Assembly: GCA_011109175.1 (NCBI GenBank)
Contig: RDEW01000022.1
Coordinates: 291,834 to 355,833 of the forward strand
Direction of reading: 5' to 3'
Source: Dicyema japonicum
Lineage: Eukaryota > Animalia > Dicyemida
Length of the DNA stretch: 64,000 nt
Made by a program: the position numbers and the translations under genes. Below, in pieces: positions 621 to 47,650 of the stretch (its first letter is position 1; every line of letters starts with the position of its first letter). Under the pieces are notes generated by a model that was given only the letters and a program-made list of their open reading frames with translations, was not told the DNA's origin and ran no database searches.

Positions 621-1760
621 ATTAATCTTTTTGGGGAACTTATCTCCATACAGAGACTACTAATTTAATTTTTTTTCGACGAATAGTTTTCCATAAAAGA
701 CTCGTGGATTTCATATGTCCAATAGATGATAATAGGCGCTTCCACGCCCTATCTTTCTTTTCTCTGATGAGCTTTGTAATTCTCTGATTTAAGCATTTTA
801 TATTTTGCAAATCAGAAGAGGTTTGCAGATGATTCATCTTCAGGGAGTTTCTTTGTTTGATGAGGAGACGAGTCTCCGAGTCCAGAGTAGGCTTGTAGGA
901 TTTGTAAACTGCACGTGGTACAAACAACTTTTCAGCTTGAAGGATTACATGGTTTAGATGGTCTACTGCTTTGTCGATGGAGCAAAATGAGGTGGGATCA
1001 AAGTTTATTAGGTTATTGTCAATGAAGAGCTTGAAATTCGACCAGTCAGCTTTCTTGTAGACCTTGAAGGTTGCTTTAATTCTACGCGAGTTATTGAATC
1101 GGCTCAGTTTTAATATAATCAGATTATGATCACTTTGAAAATCGTAGGAGACGTTCCATGAAATCTTCGGGCAATCCTAGAGGAAACAATGGATATGTCA
1201 GGGGAGGTTGGGTTGTCATTTCTTCGGATAGGTGTCCTTGTGAACATATTCGGGTGATTCAAAATCACCATTTTTTCGAGAGAGTCGATAATTAAACTCC
1301 CCCTCTTGTCTGCCGACTGGGTACTAAACCATTGCGGATGTTTGGCGTTGAAATCCCCACATAGTAACACATTTCGAATTTCTTGTAGTTTGTCGAGCTT
1401 CGGAACATAGTTTTTAGGACAGGATCCCGGCGGTGGAATGTAAATGTTGATTAGAATAAGATGTTCTGACCCATTAATAAGATCAATAGAAATTTGTTCC
1501 GCGGTCTTGTCGTGTAGAATTAAATCATCCACTTGCATGCTTACATCGTGGAAGGATAGACCGTTTCTGATAATTGTGAGTAAGCCGCCACCACGTCCAA
1601 TGCGGTCTTTTCTGATAGAGATGTATCCAGGAAAAAGTGGGGTTGAACTCTTTGTAGAAAGTTTTGACTCCTGGATAAGGCAGATGTCAATCTTGTGCTT
1701 CGTTAATAAAGATCGTAACTCCAGAATCTTTGCATTGAGTTGCATAATAACAAGGGGTTT

Positions 1761-1790
1761 TGGTCCGGGGTTTTGTTCAATATCTCCAGA
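1761..1790 (-). other. 2A-like ribosomal StopGo motif LLL-SGDIEQNPGP
   Basis: Exact D(V/I)ExNPGP consensus preceded by a hydrophobic run, immediately N-terminal to the APE domain and in frame with it. Confidence 0.85.
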
Positions 1791-1882
1791 AAGCAATAGA
1801 ATCCAGGGGAACAAACAACATCTCGAGTTTCCAGTTGAGGTATACCATCCAGGCATAAAGAGTCTGGATGGGGAAGAGCAAA

Positions 1883-1943
1883 TGGTTCTTTTTGGTGTAT
1901 TACTATACTGAGCGCCACCACAAAAGGTGAACCACATGACGCC
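1883..1943 (-). ncRNA. Putative HDV-like ribozyme / nested pseudoknot at the LINE 5' end
   Basis: P1 GGCGUC/GGCGCU (G1-U wobble), AUG linker, P2 UGGUUC/GAACCA, P3 ACC/GGU, P4 GUAU/AUAC, J4/2 ACCAAAAA. Strand order matches HDV topology and the helices covary in other copies. Confidence 0.6.
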
Positions 1944-1977
1944 ACGAGAAAAATAGCCGAGAAAAAAAAAGAGACTA

Positions 1978-2420
1978 CTAAGAATCTTGGGAGTGATCTT
2001 TGACCCTTCCACCTGTTTTCTCTTTATTCGACAGATGCTCTGACAAGGAGTCTTTGGAAACTCAATATTATAAAGACAGTCTTAAATTCAGGGTTCCAGC
2101 TTCCACCTTTTTAATCAGTTCATAAGTCGACGGTGCTTCGTGGGCCTATGGCAGGTCAGTCTCATATTAAAAGACTATAAACTCTCCATAAAGGAAAATG
2201 GAACTAACCTCTCAATTCTTTCCTCTACTCCTCGACCAGTCTGCAATCCGGAATAGTGGTTTCTCACTCTGCCGTCAAATCTGATCGATTTATCGACCAG
2301 GGTTGGAAACCCAGTGGGCATAGGAAAGCAGTTGGAGATATGGAGGAACATTACAAAAACCTCACTCGTTGTGGAATACTAGGATTAATTAGTCAATTTG
2401 ACCTCTCTTAGACTTCCATA
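1978..2420 (+). mobile_element. C-terminal/3' part of the interrupted Ingi/Vingi-like copy
   Basis: RILGVIFDP, KLNIIKT and RVGNP, ending in ggatTAATTAGtc like other family 3' ends. Confidence 0.5.
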
Positions 2421-2799: not shown

Positions 2800-4700
2800 A
2801 GGAGCGACGCGATATAGAACTGGGTACGTCTTCTCAGTTTTGTGCGAGGGGACCTAATCGAGATGGTCACGGAAAGGAGTCTCTCGCTACCGCCATGAGG
2901 ACCAACATTCGTTCTTTTATAGGAGGAACCCATATCCCTTGTTGCCCCACATCTTCTAACCATACGCGTAGACAGATAGTCCGAACATGGATGTGGAAGC
3001 CCCTCAACCTATGGTATCGGTTCTCGGAGGACTCCCAGATACTGTCTTCCAAAATTTAGAGGTGATAATTCCAGCCCTGTTAGAAGCTGGATTAGAATTA
3101 AATTGCGGGAAATGGGAAATCTACAATTGTGGTTTTTCAAAAGAAAGTATTCAAAAGTTGTATCATCTTTCGCGAAATTACTACTGGACTTATTTCCACA
3201 CTCTATGAAGACCTTATATTCCTCGGATCCACAATCACCACGCGTGCAATGAGGAGAGCTATACGGGAAAAACGACTGTTACTCGGAGAAACTCTAGACT
3301 GTGTCTACTTGACGTGCATACAACATTCCAAAGAACAGCCTCAACGTACAAAGGTTTGCATATGTCTTTAGGACTGCTTCTTATTTCACCCAATATTACC
3401 AGGTCGCACATATTGACGGGATTTTCCGTTCGACAGAGGAGCGTATTTTCAACTTCCGGTTAGAGGAATATTCATGGAAGCAGGCCACACTACCGGTCAG
3501 ACTCGGAGAGCTTGGAATTCGCAACCCTGTAGACCAGAGGTTCCCAACCTGGGTTCCGCGAAGTTCCAAAAATTTTTTAATTTTATTTTCAAAAGAATAA
3601 TTTTTCAAAAGAATAATTTTTCAAAACGAATTAATTTAATTTGCGCGTCTAAATGGAGTCTTGTGACAGTGCATATCCTAAAGTTCGGTCGCATCGAGAA
3701 AGTTATATTGCCTTTGGTTTCACATGGACTGGGGACGTGGATTGCCCTCTACTACTTTGTGTTGGTTGCGGTGAAAAACTTGCGAATAGTGCTATAGCTC
3801 CAACGAAACTTAGATGTTGTTTCTCAACCAAGCACCCAGAACTTTCAAAGAAAAAAAAGAATATTTTATGCGAAATTGGACAAGAATAAAGTTCAAGCAT
3901 CCCGTTTTACAAAAAAAAATTCAAAATAAACGAAAGAGCACTGCATGCTAGTTGTCGAGATTGTCGCTAAAAATATGAAATCTGATGACATTGAAACCGC
4001 TTTGGTTCGGTGAATAAAAAATCTGTGCTTTTTGCGCTTCATGTGGATGAAAGTTCGAATATTACAGGCCGATCACTTAAGACTTGTAGCCGTACCTATT
4101 TGTTTAGCCAACCCTTTATATTTTCTCAACGAGGTCTGGACGTCTGTGTGCCGGAAGTCTTTTGAAGATCTGCTAGTGTCATCTAACCAACATCGCCATG
4201 CCTGTTTGTTGTCTTCTGAGAGCGATGACTGGCTCATTGGAGTTTTTTGTAACTTTCTGGAGGATGAATGCGTCCGTATTAGGATCTCTTTACAACTAGG
4301 ATTAAAAGTTTGCGTACCGCATCCGTGCCAATGCAGAGACCAGATCGACTGTTTGGCCTACTTCTTCTCTCCTGCAGGAAAATTCCATCTTTAAAACCAA
4401 AAACACCTGCATCGAAACATTTACCCCTTGCAACTTATTCCAGAATGCCTCTGGCGCCTCTTCTGCCGCTGAGAAGTTCTAGAGGTTGAAACGGAAAAGT
4501 ACGCTCTTACCCAAGGATTTTTTTGTTCCGTTTGCTGTTGAGACGTCTGGTTCCCATTGCTTGTAATACTGGAATTCTTGAGTCGTCTAAGGAATCGTAT
4601 TTCTACACTATCATGAGCGCTGGTGGTTATTTGAAAAAATCTTGTTCGCCACCCTGAGAGGGAATAGCCACGCAGTCAGGGCGTCCGCTATATGACCATT
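2800..4700 (+). mobile_element. Decayed CRE-clade (RLE-type) non-LTR retrotransposon, split by a hAT insertion
   Basis: LGGLPDTVFQNL..GLELNCGKWEI and DLIFLGS (RT), LGELGIRNPVD, LGLKVCVPHPCQC (zinc finger), and an RLE C-terminus (FAVETSGS...LRGNSHAVRA) shared with 27194-27412. Confidence 0.7.
3535..4040 (+). mobile_element. hAT (Buster/Charlie, ZBED5-like) transposon left end and N-terminal transposase fragment
   Basis: Terminus CAGAGGTTCCCAACC preceded by 8-mer ctgTAgac. ORF 3653-3889 ESYIAFGFTWTG..CPLLLCVGCGEKLANSAIAPTKL..KHPE is a BED-finger region. Right TIR not found. Confidence 0.75.
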
Positions 4701-26164: not shown

Positions 26165-26346
26165 GAAGTGAAGAGAGTGACAGAATGATAGCCCGAATTT
26201 TAAAATAGTGATAGAAAAAAATTAAATTAAAATACAGCAAACCCTCATTAATCCGAACAAAAAAATTTGGATGCTTCTCAGATTGTGAAGGAAATAAATA
26301 TACTAATTTCATTTTAATTAATATTTATTTTTCATATATAAAAATA

Positions 26347-26660
26347 ATGTGGTGCTGCGTGTGGTTGAAGTTTTCCGCTTGCTTGTCTGTTCCTCCTTTC
26401 TCTTCCTAATAGAGTGGCGTCATGTGATCCACCTGTCTAGGTGACGCCCAGTGCCAGGCCGGCACGAAAAAGGATCATTTGCTCTTCACCACTCCACTGG
26501 AGGGGTTTTCACAACTGCATGTAATGGACGTCTTACCTTTTATGCTGATTCCGGATGGACTCTGTTTCTGTAGAAGTGGAAACTGGATACACTTAATTAG
26601 TTGGTTACTTTAACTTCTTTCTCGGTGTATCCGGGGTTAATAAATTAAAAAATAAATAAA
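26347..26660 (+). mobile_element. Short (~310 nt) non-autonomous retroelement with the HDV-like 5' module and the family 3' stem-loop
   Basis: Structured module 26416-26477, 3' stem GGATACAC/GTGTATCC (26585-26632), A-rich tail. Second copy at 47342-47650. Confidence 0.8.
26416..26477 (+). ncRNA. Putative HDV-like ribozyme fold in the short element
   Basis: P1 GGCGUC/GACGCC, P2 UGAUCC/GGAUCA, P3 ACC/GGU, P4 GUGCC/GGCAC, J4/2 (C)GAAAAA. Confidence 0.6.
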
Positions 26661-37100: not shown

Positions 37101-38170
37101 GCGTGGGTCATGTGGTTCACTATTTATGGTGCGTCGGATGTAGTCCTAAACTATATCTAAAAGGAACCATTTGCTCTACTAACCAGAGGACGTCCGACTG
37201 GACAGCATTCTCTCCATGTTGGAACATTTCATCCATTGAGATTGTTGACTTCAGGAGACGTGGAACAATATCCAGACCCAATGAAGTTAACAATCTAGAG
37301 CGTAAACATAAACGGGATCAGAGGAAAGATTGCCGAACTTTCCTTATTCTTGGAGAGGAACATAGTAGATATCTGCCTTCTCCAGGAAACGAAGCTTTTA
37401 AAAAACATTCCTACTCCTCTTTTTAATGGATACAACACAATAAGATCCGACCGTCCATCTGTCCAAGAAGGGAGTCTACTGGGTCTTGTAGAAAAGGAAA
37501 AAATATCTTGAGAACCCTTCTTACAATGATTACAAAAATGCAAATTTGACTGGCTTTACAAATTCTGTTGACTCAAAACTGCTAAACTTCTACCCTGAAA
37601 AATTCTCCTCCATAGACAAAGCACTATACAATCATTGACGGGAGAAAAATTTTTGCCAGAAAAGCATATATAAAATAAAATACGACTCAAGAACAAAGAA
37701 ATAGTTATGGAAAGAAACACCCTTAAGAGAATGGCACATCGATCACGAGAAGTCATTAATCGAATCAGGGCACTAAACATTCTGATCACGAAAAAGACGT
37801 ACAATATTCGAAGGAAGAAATCATGCAAATCTCTGCTGCCATGAATAATCAGATGTCAATTTCCAACATGTGGAAGATGTTGATGTGTCTGAAGAACCCA
37901 GAATACGAAGATAACAAATGGCCCCGCTTACTTATTTTCTTCCTAAAAATGTATTCAAATCAATATCAAATCATAAAAAAACACACTCATGTGACCCAGA
38001 CGGAATTCCTCTTATTCCGCTGAGACACTTGGGCCCAGCATCAATAAATGCATTGACAATCACTACAACACATCGCTAAACATAAATACAAAACTTTATG
38101 GAAACTATCAAAAATTCGTCCAATATTGAAACCGGGAAGACCGAGATCTGATAATAAGTCATTGAATCGT
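37101..38170 (+). mobile_element. Ingi/Vingi-like 5' fragment with degenerate structured module and 2A-like motif
   Basis: P2 TGGTTC/GAACCA (37113-37169), P4 GATGTAGT/ACTATATC, SGDVEQYPDP (37251-37280), then APE start. Confidence 0.7.
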
Positions 38171-40490: not shown

Positions 40491-42160
40491 GCGTGGCGTC
40501 ATGTGGCTCACTTGATGCAACAATTCTGGAGGCGCTCAAAATGCTCCTAATGCATTATCAAAAAGAGCCATTAGCTCTCTTCCACCGGGGGTACATGTCG
40601 CCCCCGGTCGACGGATTACTGGTCTGGCTACAGCTTCTCGGATTCGCATCCTACACAAGTCAAAGGACCGGATCTCCGTTATACAACTGAATGTGAATAA
40701 AAGGCAAAATTATTGAACTTAGAACTCTGATTGTTAAACTTAAAGCTGACATTGTGCTCATCCAAGAATCGAAGCTATCAGCAAAAGATACTACGCCCCT
40801 CTTTCCCGATCGCACTAAGAAACGTGGAGGAGGACTACTTACATTAATCAGAAAAGGCATAAAGTATGAGGACCATAGACTCGAAGCGAAGAAACTTTTG
40901 GGGAGTGATGAAACCACGGAGACAATCGGAATATCTGTCGGCACAACAAAATTAAGACTATATTTTGTAAACATGTATATTCCGCTTCCGGCTCATGTCG
41001 GAAACATTACACTATGTCGGACTTATCAGCACTGGAGATTTTGAACGAAGTCGTGATATGCGGCAATTTGAATGCCAAACACCCTCTCTGGTTCTTAAAT
41101 CAGTCTGCAGATACAAGAGGAAATCTGCTGTTGACGCAGTCTGGCATTCTGACAATCATCAATGACCCCTCAAAACCACAAGAACACCTCAAAGGAACTC
41201 TGACAATCCAACCTCCCCGGATATCACACTCTGTTCACCACAGCTTTCAACAACGATTAATTGGTCCGTCATCTACGACACCCGAAGTGATCATAATCCT
41301 ATTCAGCTAAAAATCAAAAGCGAAATTACCAGTGGAAAAAAGAAACCTGCATATACAATCTTGCAAATTGGCAATTATTCCGATCAGTTACAGATTAGCA
41401 TTTGGCTAATATACAGCTGGAAAACTTTACCTCCCTTGATATAGTTGTTGCCTACGTCAACAAAGTCATCTTGGAAGCAAGAACAATGACTGTCCCTAAA
41501 AGATATGTCGTTTACACGAGAGAGTACGGAAGAAGGCTCTGGTCAAGGAACGAAACCGTCTCAAAAAAGCAGGGATTCGTTCCTCCAGATCAAATATCCG
41601 TCTAAAAGTGATGAACAAGAAAATAAAAGCCAATGAATTCAAAATACAGAGAGCTAAATGGAAGATGGTCTTTACGTCAATAATTCGTACCGGTCAACAT
41701 CCGAAGTCTGGAAGACTATTCGAAATATCTCGAAGGTGGATGAGAGGACACCCGGAAATGACGAATTCTGCCAAAATGACCTAAACGCCCTAATAAAATA
41801 CTACGCGAAAATCTCTCACAACAACCACATGAGGACTTACCACCCAAACCGCCGCTAAAAAACCGAAAAGGGATCAATTAACTTATTTCACGGAAAAGGA
41901 GGTAGTGGCATCCTTAAGCCAAACAAAAGTAACACATTCTCATTGTCCAGACGGAATTCCCATAATCCTCCAGAAAAACCTAGGCAATGAGGGAATCTGT
42001 ACCCTGACCAAAATCTACAACTGGTCGATTAATTATAACTCAATCCCAACGGTATGGAAACTTGCAAACATTTGCCCAGTATTGAAGCCAGGAAAACCGA
42101 AAGAAGACCCTTCAGGCCTTTCTCATGCTCCATGTCAAAAATTCTGGAAAAGCTTATATT
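40491..42160 (+). mobile_element. Ingi/Vingi-like 5' half (structured module, APE, start of RT)
   Basis: P1 GGCGTC/GGCGCT, P2 TGGCTC/GAGCCA (40495-40570); LIQESKL, GGGLLTLIR, CGNLNAKHPLW, VWKLANICPVLKPGKP. Confidence 0.8.
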
Positions 42161-43029
42161 AATTTAATTATATAAGACCGTTTGCAGACTGTGGAGGTAG
42201 GGAAAAATAGCATGTATGACATACTTGCAATCGAGATGAGCAGATCCTGGTTAAAGGTCCTCGTTATTCCAATAGTAATGGCGTAAGACGGAATTGCAAC
42301 AAAGTACCACAAGGGTTATCTAAAACAGTTAGGGGTAGATAAGAAGCTAACTTTTTTTATTGTTGGTTAAATAAAGTGGTTTAAGGTTTTTAACTATTTA
42401 TATTAATAATTATGATTGATCTCTTCACAACCCTGAACAATCTCTTATCCTATAGAGAATGTTTTGTTGACTGCACATTCGGAGCCATGACCCTTGATCC
42501 TGCGAATTTTAATATTCTTTGCGTTTTTATCATTAAATAAAGTGAATCCTCGCCAGTATTTAAATTTTCCACATTTCGAAAAATTTTCTAACAATCATGT
42601 TCTCATTATTAATTAGCCAATTTTTAAATTGCAAAATTACTTTGGAAGACATATCCTACGAGACAATTAGGTTCAGAGTTTCAATCTCCAACAACGAAAA
42701 TCAGACAATTTATATAGACGATGCAGCAATCGGTAGAAAAGTTGAAGATTTTTTATATTAAATACACTGAATAAGACAATTATAAAAATTCTTTAGAAGG
42801 TTCAGAAAATAGTAAATAAGAATCGGAAAACAAGACAAAATGGATATTGGAGTTATATTAACACCAATAGAGAGGAACTCTAATGTTGAGAAGTTTTGCT
42901 CATTTCTTTAACAATAAAGTACAAAGTATGTATAAACAAGTATAAAAATTGGATAGTAGTCGTGTAATAGTTTAAATGATGATTTTTGGCTTATTAATAA
43001 TAATAATAATAATAATAATTAAGCCATTT

Positions 43030-45420
43030 TTGCGTGTTTGAATATGCCATGTGGTTCGCTGACTACTGTTGGCATTTGGAAGAAAAGAGCCACACTTTAC
43101 TCTATCTTCACCGGTGGACCAACAAAGCCTAACCGTTGCGGGGAAGTTGAGGCAAACCCTGGACCAGCCAAAATAGTTCAACTCAATATAAATGAAATCA
43201 AGAACAAGATAATTGAACTTAGAACTTATTTAAAAGACATGCTGATAATCCAAGAATCCACACTTTCCCACGATAATACAGCACCAAGATTCCTAGGATT
43301 CATAGTCATTCGTCGTGACAGACCTTGGTAACTTGATGAGGCCTTCTCACACTAATTCGTAACGGAATTCCGTTTGCGTATATAACTGAAAATATCTATA
43401 GTATGCTCAACGAACATGGAAATCTCGAACTTGTGACTATGAAAGTACGATTCCCAAGAATTTTAATAATATTGGTCAACGCACATCTACCGCCTTTGAG
43501 TTCCTTCTCTTTCTGTGCTCCCAGAAACACTCTTCTCACTTGACTGAGGGATGTGATTATCTGTGGTGACTTCAATGCGAAGCACCCATTATGGTTGACA
43601 ATACAAGCCCATGACAAAAGGGGAAGATGATAATTGAGGACCTTCACAGTCTCTGCATAATCACGAACAGGATTTCCACACATGAACACCTACTCGACGT
43701 AACAATAAACCCTCATCCATTGAAATCTTTCTGTCATCTCCATCCCTTGCCCTTCTTATTGACTTGTCAGTGAAATATGACACTATAAGTGACCACAATC
43801 CAATATTTTGGAGGTAAAACGAGGCTACAGATGAAAGGACAGTTTCCGACAATAATTAGTGACCCTGGGGGTAATAATAAGGAATATTTGTCAAGGTGTT
43901 CTACAAAGTTCAAGAACTATTCGAAGGCGGACTGGATTGGTTTTAGCGCGTTTGCGGACAATAGTTTATTCGGCTTCGCTGTTCAAAACTTTCCAATTGA
44001 TAAGGCAGCCCAGATATTAACCTCAGTAATTCTGAGGCCGACAAAATGTTTATCTTCCTATCATCTTACAAAAACTTTAATCTCAAATTATCTTCGGACA
44101 TCCTGGCACTCATCAAAAATGGGATAAGTTGAAGAAAACCGGCTCTCTCAATTTCAGAATATACCAACTAATCCGTGCTAACCACATAAAACAAATGGAG
44201 TTGGCTTGCTAATCGACTAAGCTACAAAAAGTCGTGTGGCACCTTCTGGAAAACAATGAGAAGTATCAAGTCCTATAAACGAAGATGGCGGCGGAGTGGA
44301 AACCGTTACCCACAGTGATTCGGAACCTGCACTCAAATTTGCAAATAATCTTATGAAATATTATGTGATTATTAGCCACAGAATATCTCTCGCTCTCTGC
44401 ATGTGAGGATGTGGTCCACAACAGAAACCATATACTACTTACTTCACTCCCCATGATGTGGACAATACTATTAAATTACGTACAACTTTGGTGTCTATAG
44501 ATATACAGAAAGCCTTCGACTCTGTTTCAAGGACACTCTTTACAAAAAAAATTATTAATTCAAATTTACATCCGAACATCATGCTATTTCTTACGTGGAA
44601 GAGGCCAGATTGGAAAAATTACTTCAAAATCAAGATTATTCCCAAATGCAGCCCAGAAGGTTCCCCTTTTATCTTATCTTCTATTTAATTTATTTCTATA
44701 CGACTTAAGTACCACCACAGATTAGAAACCATATAATCTTACGTGGACGACCTGATTATCGCTGCAAGAGAGAAATCCCCTTCCAGGGCTGTAGCGATGG
44801 TTCAGTCACACCTCAACCAGATGTGTGACTGGCTATCCTAGATTTTCACATCTGTGTCTCAGTTCACCCTATTTACTACGGAATGGAGATTTAACCATTC
44901 CTATTCGGTCTACGCGAATCCAGAAAATCCCTGTAGTGACATTCGACTCTATGACATTCTCCAATCATACTGAGGAAGTGCTAACTAATCCACTTCGAAA
45001 GTGGAACGTCCTAAAATCATAAAGAATCTTCAAGTTATTGGGCCAACAATTGAATATGCCTTTTCTGCCTCGATATTTGCTCTTCCCTCTTCGGGGTTGA
45101 GCGTATGGACTCTCTTAAGCAGAAGATCATGTGGCATATGCAACCAGACATCACATTCATCCCCAGTCTACTTTTAGAGGCGACGACGTTAAGAAATAGC
45201 CAGGGCTTCCTATGTATATGCAAGAAACTAGGAAACCTATTCAGAGAAAGGGCGGCCCATGCGGAGGAATCAAGATAGATAATAAAAAAGTGCACTCCTA
45301 TATAATTCCTCTGCAGATATAAAAGAAGACAATTCCGGAATGCTGGCGAAATTCGAGAAATGTTTGAGGCTGCGATCATTTAATTAGTGAGTTGATACTT
45401 TCTTGGTGGTCTTGGAGTTT
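43030..45420 (+). mobile_element. Near full-length, decayed Ingi/Vingi-like LINE (~2.4 kb) with both termini
   Basis: P1 ATGCCA/TGGCAT, P2 TGGTTC/GAGCCA; CGEVEANPGP (43137-43166); APE; DIQKAFDSV; YVDD; 3' end AAII-TAA-TTAG plus stem. No RNase H recognised. Confidence 0.8.
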
Positions 45421-46589: not shown

Positions 46590-47341
46590 CTATTCTTTTA
46601 TAATGACTTTCTTTAAATTTGAAAGCGAATTAGTAGGAAGTAACATTAAGTCTACTGAATTTGTTAATTCGGTTAATCAATAAGGGAGCTAAATAACATA
46701 GTACTATGGGATTGTGAGCGAATTCTACGAGTTTCACATTATCTCTCTTAATGTGGAGGGCACAATACGATGATATTCAGTGGTTATCAAAAACATTGAA
46801 TAGTATTCGCATAGAATACACATATGGGATGAGTTCCAACAATGCAATAAGACTCATATCTGTAGAGAAAGTGCACACTAAACTTAGAATTTAAATGAAG
46901 AGCCTAAGCTGAAGGGAACACTAAAAAAAACACTCTTATGGGGCTGTTGAAGATTATCTGCTTAGTTTCTTCAATTCCTAGATTACATCTTCACTTCAAT
47001 TCCTAGATTTCTGTGAATCTCATAACTCTAATAACTAGCCAATAATTCCCTGATCCGCCTCAAAATGAACTCGTCCAAGTCCTTTCAATGAATGTGCCAG
47101 ATGAGATTTGAAGCGTAGTGATACTTCCTCGCTTTGATACATTGTATATCCAATCCCTCCTGATTCCAGCATTTCGTCCATCAACGATAGAAAATGGGAA
47201 CTAGAGATCACATAAAAGCGACACAATCATTCGACTGGTAGACCACAATATATGGTTTAAATGCTTTAAGAAACAGTGTAGAGATATTTATACCATTTAA
47301 TTCTACCATTTTTTATTATTAACATTATATAAATATCATTC

Positions 47342-47650
47342 ATGTGGTGCTGCGTGGTTAATTGATTGAAGTTTTCTTGCTTGCTTGTCTGTTCCTCCTC
47401 TCTCTTCCTAATATGTGATCCATCTGTCTAGGTACGCCCAGTGCCAGGCCGGCACGAAAAAGGATCATTTGCTCTTCCCCACTCCACTGGAGGGGTTTTT
47501 ACAACTGCATGTAATGGACGTCTTACCTTTTATGTTGATTCCGGATGGACTCTGTTTCTGTATAAGTGGAAAACTGGATACACTTAATTAGTTGTTCACT
47601 TTAACTTCATTTCGGTGTATCGGGGTTAAAAATTAATTAATATAAATTAA
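47342..47650 (+). mobile_element. Second copy of the short non-autonomous element; lacks the 5' strand of P1
   Basis: Highly similar to 26347-26660 with the same start (ATGTGGTGCTGCGTG). An 11-nt deletion removes gagtggcgtca. Confidence 0.85.

Follow-up and report, generated by a model that had tools for sequence, protein, structure and literature searches.

A segment at 1883-1943 on the minus strand of a Dicyema japonicum contig can be drawn as a pseudoknot of the kind formed by HDV-like ribozymes, and similar segments, of about 65 bases, stand near the start of several LINEs in the same stretch of DNA. The locus raises the question of whether this pairing is real and maintained in the RNA, from what it descends, and whether it still cleaves. 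The stretch analysed, referred to below as the window, comprises 64,000 nt (assembly GCA_011109175.1, contig RDEW01000022.1, positions 291,834-355,833, forward strand).

Copies of the fold in the window

Six copies of the fold were located in the window. G1, the first base of P1, lies at 1943 (minus strand), 26416, 37105, 40495 and 43044, and the sixth copy, at 47408, is without the 5' strand of P1. Beyond these six, one 5'-truncated copy (around 25030) and one remnant (31285) were recognized. The common helix order, P1-P2-P3-P3'-P1'-P4-P2', was found at the five full and three partial copies where an earlier note had placed it.

1883 to 1943, minus strand: fold of copy c1
1943-1938 with 1916-1911, minus strand: P1 of c1, with a G1·U pair
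1937-1935, minus strand: AUG in J1/2 of c1
1934-1929 with 1888-1883, minus strand: P2 of c1
1928-1926 with 1919-1917, minus strand: P3 of c1
1925-1920, minus strand: L3 of c1, UUUUGU
1908-1905 with 1900-1897, minus strand: P4 of c1
1896-1889, minus strand: J4/2 of c1, ACCAAAAA
25008 to 25074, plus strand: c25, a 5'-truncated member of the c2 family in which only P4, J4/2 and a mutated P2' remain
26416 to 26477, plus strand: fold of c2, every helix perfect; P1 GGCGUC/GACGCC, P2 UGAUCC/GGAUCA, P3 ACC/GGU, L3 UGUCUA, P4 UGCC/GGCA, J4/2 CGAAAAA
31285 to 31340, plus strand: c31, a remnant with leader CGCGU, P1 GGCGCC/GGCGUC and CAUGUGG retained; P2' not found
37105 to 37170, plus strand: fold of c5; P1 degenerate, P2 UGGUUC/GAACCA, P3 ACU/GGU, P4 GAUGU/AUAUC
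40495 to 40570, plus strand: fold of c3; P1 GGCGUC/GGCGCU, P2 UGGCUC/GAGCCA (compensatory), P4 AAUGC/GCAUU, J4/2 AUCAAAAA
43044 to 43092, plus strand: fold of c4; P1 AUGCCA/UGGCAU with the register shifted by one, P2 UGGUUC/GAGCCA, upstream leader GCGUGUUUGAAU
47398 to 47484, plus strand: c47, a sister of c2 (86-93% identical) in which an 11-nt deletion takes away the 5' strand of P1

Read on the minus strand, c1 consists of a leader, GGCGUC, AUG, UGGUUC, ACC, UUUUGU, GGU, GGCGCU, CAG, a 4-bp hairpin, ACCAAAAA, GAACCA and a CU-rich tract. In c2 the fold begins about 105 nt into a 350-bp SINE-like unit (26310-26660). P1, P2 and P4 are good in c3, where a 14-nt insertion enlarges the P3/L3 region. 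In c4, P1 and P2 are good; this copy is without a clear P3, without P4 and without a C in the joiner from P1' to P2'. In c5, P2, P3 and P4 are good and P1 is broken; it is an old, decayed copy of a family like that of the Octopus sinensis protein P0001, with its 2A decayed to YPDP. Except for c2 and c47, the window copies can barely be aligned outside the motif, and thus represent several subfamilies and not recent duplicates.

A pyrimidine-rich (CU) tract lies just 3' of P2' in the window family (for instance at 1865-1882, minus strand) and likewise in the canonical metagenomic families described below (L007:181-195, L035:418-450); translation start and protein binding are possible roles. Minimum free-energy folding also pairs the leader GCGUG with CAUGU (c3, c5) or AUAUGC (c4), at 40491-40504, 37101-37120 and 43033-43048 of the window. 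Such an alternative hairpin could sequester J1/2 or the 5' strand of P1 and compete with the pseudoknot.

Pair conservation and relatives of the fold

The bare topology is cheap. Hundreds of sites in the window satisfy a loose 6+6+3 bp descriptor with G·U pairs allowed, so that the evidence must come from the comparison of copies. With a stricter score and dinucleotide shuffles, c1 was exceeded by 1 of 100 shuffled sequences and c2 by 0 of 100; c3 (enlarged L3), c4 (without clear P3 or P4) and c5 (broken P1) do not pass this score. Minimum free-energy folding was rejected as a test, because it cannot draw pseudoknots and picks either P1 or P2; its z-scores were unremarkable.

For the pair counts, the six window copies were aligned with two copies from O. 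sinensis, one belonging to P0001 and the other lying at L037:3068-3166 (minus strand). Standard pairs fill 90.7% of the pair cells of these eight sequences, compared with 32-50% after a shift of the 3' strands by 1-3 columns, and the observed covariation score was reached by 0 of 500 shuffles. An alignment of seven sequences gave the same covariation picture. P2 pairs in every one of the eight, and three of its pairs have changed at both bases (in c2, G-C to A-U and U-A to C-G; in c3, U-A to C-G), as expected from the earlier claim that it varies and always pairs. For P1, 83% of the cells are paired, with two two-sided changes (c4 and L037); that it varies yet pairs is correct for c1 to c4 and fails in c5, where it is broken. 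P3 is 88% paired. The sequence of P4 differs among copies, yet a stem of 4-5 bp forms in c1, c2, c3 and c5, and a stem is also present in both octopus copies, with a compensatory change between c5 (GAUGU/AUAUC) and the copy of P0001 (GAUAC/GUAUC). P4 is absent in c4. P1 crosses P2, as in a nested double pseudoknot, in c1, c2, c3, c4 and both octopus copies.

Furthermore, a covariance model built from the fold family and run across the whole window with filters off recovered exactly the known copies (six at E <= 2e-10, c25 at E = 7e-4, c31 at E = 0.6); no further match below E = 0.1 was obtained in the window. Among the eight sequences aligned, the covariation is in favour of the earlier note. 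In addition, the conserved CAUGUGGUUC falls in different reading frames in c1 and c4, and in c2 a stop codon directly follows the AUG, which places the conservation at the nucleotide level. Taken together with the covariation, the frame difference supports the view, also put forward in the earlier note, that the fold is selected as RNA.

As for its descent, HDV-like ribozymes are nested double pseudoknots that cleave at the first base of P1, with a P1 of 6-7 bp, a P1.1 of one or two pairs and a core made of L3 and J4/2 (PMC4908430). In the R2 ribozyme consensus the catalytic C and four further positions are invariant, P4 is variable and J1/4 measures 0-2 nt (PMC3774820). The window copies share with the ribozymes of R2, R4, RTE and baggins, and with those of HDV and CPEB3, the strand order P1-P2-P3-L3-P3'-P1'-(P1.1)-P4-J4/2-P2'; most of them also have a P3 of 3 bp, a P4 of variable sequence, a P1 within the range of 6-7 bp, and adenosines preceded by a C ahead of P2'. 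They differ from these ribozymes in their 6-nt U-rich L3 without a fixed C or G, the lack of a fixed P1.1 and the longer A-run of J4/2; in addition, J1/2 contains the start codon, and G1 is preceded by a leader that has been inherited.

The octopus copy at L037 comes nearest to the canonical form within the family. It has a 7-bp P1 with G1·U, L3 UUCUCGU, GG after P1', a perfect 7-bp P4 and a possible P1.1 of (U)C/GG, and it retains the CAUGUGGUUCACC and GAACCA of the family. The L3 sequences of HDV and CPEB3 are UCCUCGC and UUCACGU, respectively. Four unrelated metagenomic contigs with 2A-bearing LINEs (L005, L007, L022, L035) share GCC-UGC(A/U)CG(A/U)-GGU, a P1 of 6-7 bp (with G1·U in L005 and L007), a GC/GC P1.1, helices P2 and P4 that covary, and a GCAA(A)U that leads into P2', at about 100-250 nt upstream of their own 2A. 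The features of L037 and of these contigs agree with the general description of the class and with the R2 consensus. The likeness to HDV-like ribozymes extends in L005, L007, L035 and L037 to a 7-nt L3 (U1, C3, G6) and a 2-bp P1.1, a possible one in L037. The same topology with other sequences occurs in L003 and L002; in the dinucleotide-shuffle test, L007 and L003 were matched by 0 of 100 and L002 by 2 of 100 shuffles.

No convincing fold was detected upstream of the 2A or APE in L009, L010, L011, L034, L036, L038 and L039, which means either that the module is not universal or that the descriptor misses variants. No ribozyme family of Rfam matched the window at the gathering threshold, nor the two best copies and nine related loci at E <= 10, a negative that says little since the canonical relatives were missed too. 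Given the near-canonical octopus copy and the textbook ribozymes of the metagenomic 2A-LINEs, the sequence comparisons lead us to conclude that the fold is genuine and that its ancestors were HDV-like ribozymes as found in non-LTR retrotransposons (L1Tc, R2, RTE). The HDV-like topology assigned in the earlier note is borne out by this homology.

The elements that carry the fold and their 5' ends

The features of the c1 element, and of the octopus leader compared with it below, are as follows.

652 to 1981, minus strand: c1 element with its target-site duplication; the element is 664-1969, about 1.3 kb, and TTAGTAGTCTCT stands at 1981-1970 and 663-652
1119 to 2012, minus strand: c1 open reading frame, with a leader peptide, the 2A peptide DIEQNPGP and then directly the APE endonuclease
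1773 to 1796, minus strand: 2A peptide of c1 (DIEQNPGP), in frame with the J1/2 AUG, the APE domain directly after it
1944 to 1969, minus strand: c1 leader, inside the inserted DNA; 1953-1944 is UUUUUCUCGU and 1969-1954 a further partial duplicate of 1953-1944
L037:3156-3170, minus strand: L037 leader, a copy of its own P2(3')-P3-L3

The reading frame passes through the fold to the 2A peptide and the endonuclease, and the J1/2 AUG is in frame with the 2A in c1, P0001 and L037. The c1 element is non-autonomous, consisting of the fold, the 2A, a partial APE and an A-rich tail. In c4, the 2A EVEANPGP (43131-43154) is followed by APE, its frame is intact, and the in-frame AUG is formed by the first three bases of P1. 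The 2A/APE versions of c3 and c5 are decayed, that of c3 being visible as a decayed APE downstream of the fold. In L035 the annotated start AUG lies at the J4/2-P2' junction (L035:402-410, GCAAAUGUCGGAC); there too the start codon is embedded in the ribozyme, at a different place from that in the window family. It was also observed that c4 begins 24 nt after an (AAT)n run (43000-43043), apparently the 3' tail of c3, the element before it (from 40490), with the two stacked head to tail, and that the c2, c25 and c47 units likewise terminate in (TAA)n.

A HMMER scan of 1.8 billion representative proteins returned 3075 relatives, and NPGP precedes APE in 63 of the best 150 of them. The closest, with 49% identity, is the annotated O. 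sinensis protein P0001, the start codon of which is the AUG in J1/2 of a near-identical fold; it was also the only protein found by word-index searches with the leader region. The setting is thus an animal genome, and the closest LINE relative is found in the octopus. For the fishing of related loci, an alignment of 22 2A-APE N-termini was too diverse, while one of six sequences worked. Relatives of full length have about 1050 aa and carry APE and RT in a single ORF; both domains were identified in P0049, P0020, P0019 and P0011, and no RNase H Pfam match was obtained in any of these four. A single APE-RT frame without an RNase H match fits Vingi, which is described without RNase H (PMC13708176), better than Ingi, which has one.

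The closest known parallel is L1Tc of Trypanosoma cruzi (ingi clade), in which a ribozyme is followed by an in-frame 2A and APE-RT (PMC6765202; PMC5814959) and the first 77 nt (L1TcRz/Pr77) act both as HDV-like ribozyme and as promoter (PMC5814959). As in L1Tc, a fold of HDV topology stands at the head, an in-frame 2A directly precedes APE, the ORF is single and the target-site duplication has 12 bp; the 2A and APE are seen in c1 and c4, APE-RT in the four relatives. The c1 and c2 elements, moreover, resemble the NARTc/SIDER elements of L1Tc in being short non-autonomous partners that carry the same head. On the other hand, the window relatives show no RNase H match, the host is an animal and not a trypanosomatid, and L1TcRz cleaves at element position +1, whereas G1 here lies 5-15 nt inside the copy (about 105 nt in c2).

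The 5' end of c1 was established from four sequencing runs of the same species, which behaved as genomic DNA. An empty-site allele was present in all four, with a joint from 651 to 1970 that skips 1318 bp, at which 12 bases fit both sides, at single-copy depth. The 12-bp duplication TTAGTAGTCTCT occupies 1981-1970 and 663-652 and adjoins the A-rich tail. Joint and duplication together indicate that the inserted DNA begins at 1969, 26 nt upstream of G1 (1943). The insertion is polymorphic. Contig depth summed over the element exceeds that of the unique flanks several hundred-fold, a ratio not to be read as a copy number, and suggests a non-autonomous family with recent activity. The same four runs have 22 nt in place of 54 bp at 3562-3617 of the window; this indel or allelic difference has nothing to do with the fold. 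For c3, c5 and c2, a search for duplications by exact-word matches gave only AT-rich, unconvincing candidates; c1 is the only copy with firm boundaries.

The leader between the insertion boundary and G1 is shared in part. Contigs of sister copies are alike up to 1952/1953 and only then split into different flanks, which implies that at least 9-10 nt upstream of G1, UUUUUCUCGU, were inherited; this segment is common to the sister copies and O. sinensis. More widely, a leader of the form (U)nAGCGU / UUCUCGU is common to c1, c3, c4, c5 and both octopus copies: a U-run and AGCG(U/C) precede P1 in the other subfamilies and the octopus, and GCGUG in c4. The 15-nt leader of L037, GGUUCACCUUCUCGU, repeats the internal P2(3')-P3-L3 segment exactly and in direct orientation, and it ends in the same 7 nt (UUCUCGU) as the c1 leader. 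The latter is composed of UUUUUUUUCUCG, GCUA and UUUUUCUCGU, that is, the homologous leader and a second partial duplicate. From its sequence, the leader looks like an old 5' duplication inherited since; the L037 and c1 leaders recall the 5' duplication model for R2 (PMC3774820). The c2 and c47 units share about 105 nt upstream of the fold (26310-26415 and 47307-47411), containing GCGUGUGGUUGA; this is similar to the 5' half of the fold, as though a second and degenerate one were present, and may be compared with the tandem Pr77 signatures of SIDER2.

Judged by these comparisons, G1 is not the 5' end of the DNA copies: it comes after a leader that was inherited and measures 5-15 nt, or about 105 nt in c2. 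The earlier placement of the fold at the 5' end of LINEs is therefore right in that it heads 2A-APE LINEs, and has to be amended by the leader. An alternative P1 formed from the leader (AGCGU with GCGCU), with cleavage at the first base of the copy, was considered and rejected as a general rule: it has 5 bp in c3, 3 bp in c1 and 0 bp in c2.

Catalytic core and possible functions

The departures from canonical HDV listed in the earlier note (a 6-nt L3, no CC/GG P1.1, an A-rich J4/2 and (GC)GT before G1) were all seen. The L3 of the window family is U-rich (UUUUGU, UGUCUA, AUUUAU, and UUUUCU in the copy of P0001), no C or G is conserved in it across the family, and no canonical GCC-UGCNCGN-GGU core was found in the window; L037, L005, L007, L035 and L022, by contrast, have the L3 of about 7 nt in which C and G are conserved. 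A P1.1 between UG of L3 and CA after P1' is possible in c1, c2 and c47, at differing L3 positions, and is not evident in c5 or c4. P1 has 6 bp in c1, c2, c3 and c4 and 7 bp in L037; its first pair is G1·U in c1, c3 and L037, G-C in c2 and A-U in c4. A C at the P4/J4/2 boundary followed by four or five A is present in c1, c2, c3, c5, c47, c25 and both octopus copies and absent in c4; a C and an A-run precede P2' in 7 of 8 family members. Finally, the elements L1Tc, R4, RTE and baggins begin at their cleavage site (PMC3774820; PMC5814959), whereas c1 starts 26 nt before G1.

The L3 and the P1.1 without a fixed position suggest that the catalytic core of the window subfamilies has drifted and, with the leader before G1, that the fold may no longer self-cleave. 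The L3 C and G are invariant in R2 ribozymes, and an R2 variant altered there is inactive in vitro, although HDV-like ribozymes tolerate much core variation (PMC3774820). The 6-nt L3 without conserved C or G and the inherited leader argue against an active ribozyme making the 5' end in these subfamilies.

The interpretation that we prefer, and to which we would give an even chance, is that the fold is mainly a structural 5' module whose self-cleavage is weak, conditional or lost in the subfamilies of the window. It is a nested double pseudoknot conserved at the RNA level and descended from the HDV-like ribozymes that head non-LTR retrotransposons; in single-ORF 2A-APE(-RT) LINEs, and in the short non-autonomous elements derived from them, it begins 5-15 nt in from the 5' end. 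Translation would start at the J1/2 AUG (in P1 in c4) and would have to pass through P2-P3-P1'-P4-P2', and the 2A peptide would shed the leader peptide dictated by the RNA from the endonuclease. The helices have been kept by compensatory change while the core has drifted (L3, P1.1, and c4 without P4 or the candidate catalytic C), and the RNAs copied into DNA still bore the leader upstream of G1. The fold may control access to the AUG, act in an IRES-like manner or be bound by an element protein, as the R2 protein binds the 5' pseudoknot of R2, and it may mark the RNA 5' end for the protein of the element; the more canonical relatives probably still cleave.

There is precedent for relatives that keep the fold and failed to cleave in vitro, namely SIDER1 signatures from T. 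brucei and T. congolense (PMC5814959) and the sow bug R2 ribozyme, which differs at the conserved L3 C and G (PMC3774820). Their inactivity was assayed, whereas that of the window copies is a prediction from sequence, and the c1 family was very active in transposition recently. Two further observations weigh against the structural interpretation: all copies but c4 keep the C and A-run before P2', like C75-G-A-A of HDV, and c1 and c3 retain the G1·U wobble. As the c1 family is very high-copy, polymorphic and recently active with its present core, this core serves whatever function is needed. The retained leader could itself be compatible with cleavage, if an uncleaved fraction is the template or the leader is re-copied after cleavage.

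A ribozyme still active with a variant core deserves serious consideration, though we hold it somewhat doubtful. A co-transcriptional cut 5' of G1 would free the element RNA from read-through or own-promoter transcripts and leave it uncapped, the fold then driving translation from the J1/2 AUG; the leader would survive through a minority of uncleaved templates or a jump of the reverse transcriptase onto the cleaved leader. The topology and covariation are as in active ribozymes, the short J1/2 and the P1 and P2 of 6 bp fit most HDV-like ribozymes (PMC4908430), and the C with its A-run, the G1·U of c1, c3 and L037, the existence of near-canonical and canonical relatives, and the L1Tc-like layout (ribozyme, 2A, APE, 12-bp duplication) all point the same way. 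Against it stand the leader, inherited across subfamilies and two species, the 105 nt or so upstream of the fold in c2 and c47, the L3 without conserved C or G, the P1.1 of no conserved position, and c4, which has an intact 2A frame yet neither P4 nor joiner C; the lack of Rfam HDV-type matches at E <= 10 weighs little, as already noted.

Rather improbable, in our estimation, is a sharper outcome in one of two directions: either a working HDV-type ribozyme with a new minimal core, whose leader (a duplicate of its own P2-P3-L3) is cut off and then re-copied by end-to-end template jumping of the reverse transcriptase, or an ex-ribozyme fully converted to a translation or packaging element.

It is very improbable that conservation acts only at the DNA or protein level, through an internal promoter (an initiator with downstream elements), N-terminal coding or both, with incidental helices. 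Such a reading would accommodate the conserved unpaired blocks (leader GCGUG, CAUGUG, the A-run, the CU-rich tract after P2'), the AUG in frame with the 2A, and the parallel of L1Tc, the first 77 nt of which are promoter and ribozyme (PMC5814959). It does not account for three two-sided changes in P2 and two in P1 with 0/8 P2 copies unpaired, for distant families that reach the same topology with unrelated helix sequences, or for the frame difference of the motif between c1 and c4 and the stop right after the AUG of c2; a promoter role may coexist with the fold and cannot explain the pairing. Chance pairing in repeated sequence, for which the hundreds of loose descriptor matches and the failure of c3, c4 and c5 under the strict descriptor could be cited, has next to no likelihood; within the reach of sequence analysis the pair counts have refuted it, with the covariation and slide controls, the shuffle tests and the recurrence across species and families on the other side.

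HDV-like ribozymes at the head of non-LTR retrotransposons are established for R2, R4, RTE, baggins and the trypanosomatid L1Tc/ingi elements (PMC3774820; PMC5814959; PMC6765202). In the open-access literature searched, an HDV-like fold paired with a 2A peptide was found for L1Tc only, and no report of such ribozymes in molluscan or 2A-bearing metazoan LINEs was found. The layout of ribozyme, 2A and APE is now seen in an animal genome, in O. sinensis and in several unrelated metagenomic LINE families, which suggests that this branch of APE-type LINEs has had the module for a long time and carries it widely. These elements form a graded natural series, from canonical (metagenomic) through near-canonical (octopus) to a drifted core in a recently very active family; the helices persist at every step, and the cut site is preceded by a leader that was inherited. 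The series is of interest for Vingi-based gene-writing systems, into which 5' UTRs are now being engineered (PMC13708176), and it could show which part of the HDV fold retrotransposition needs besides cleavage: translation start, protein binding or 5'-end formation.
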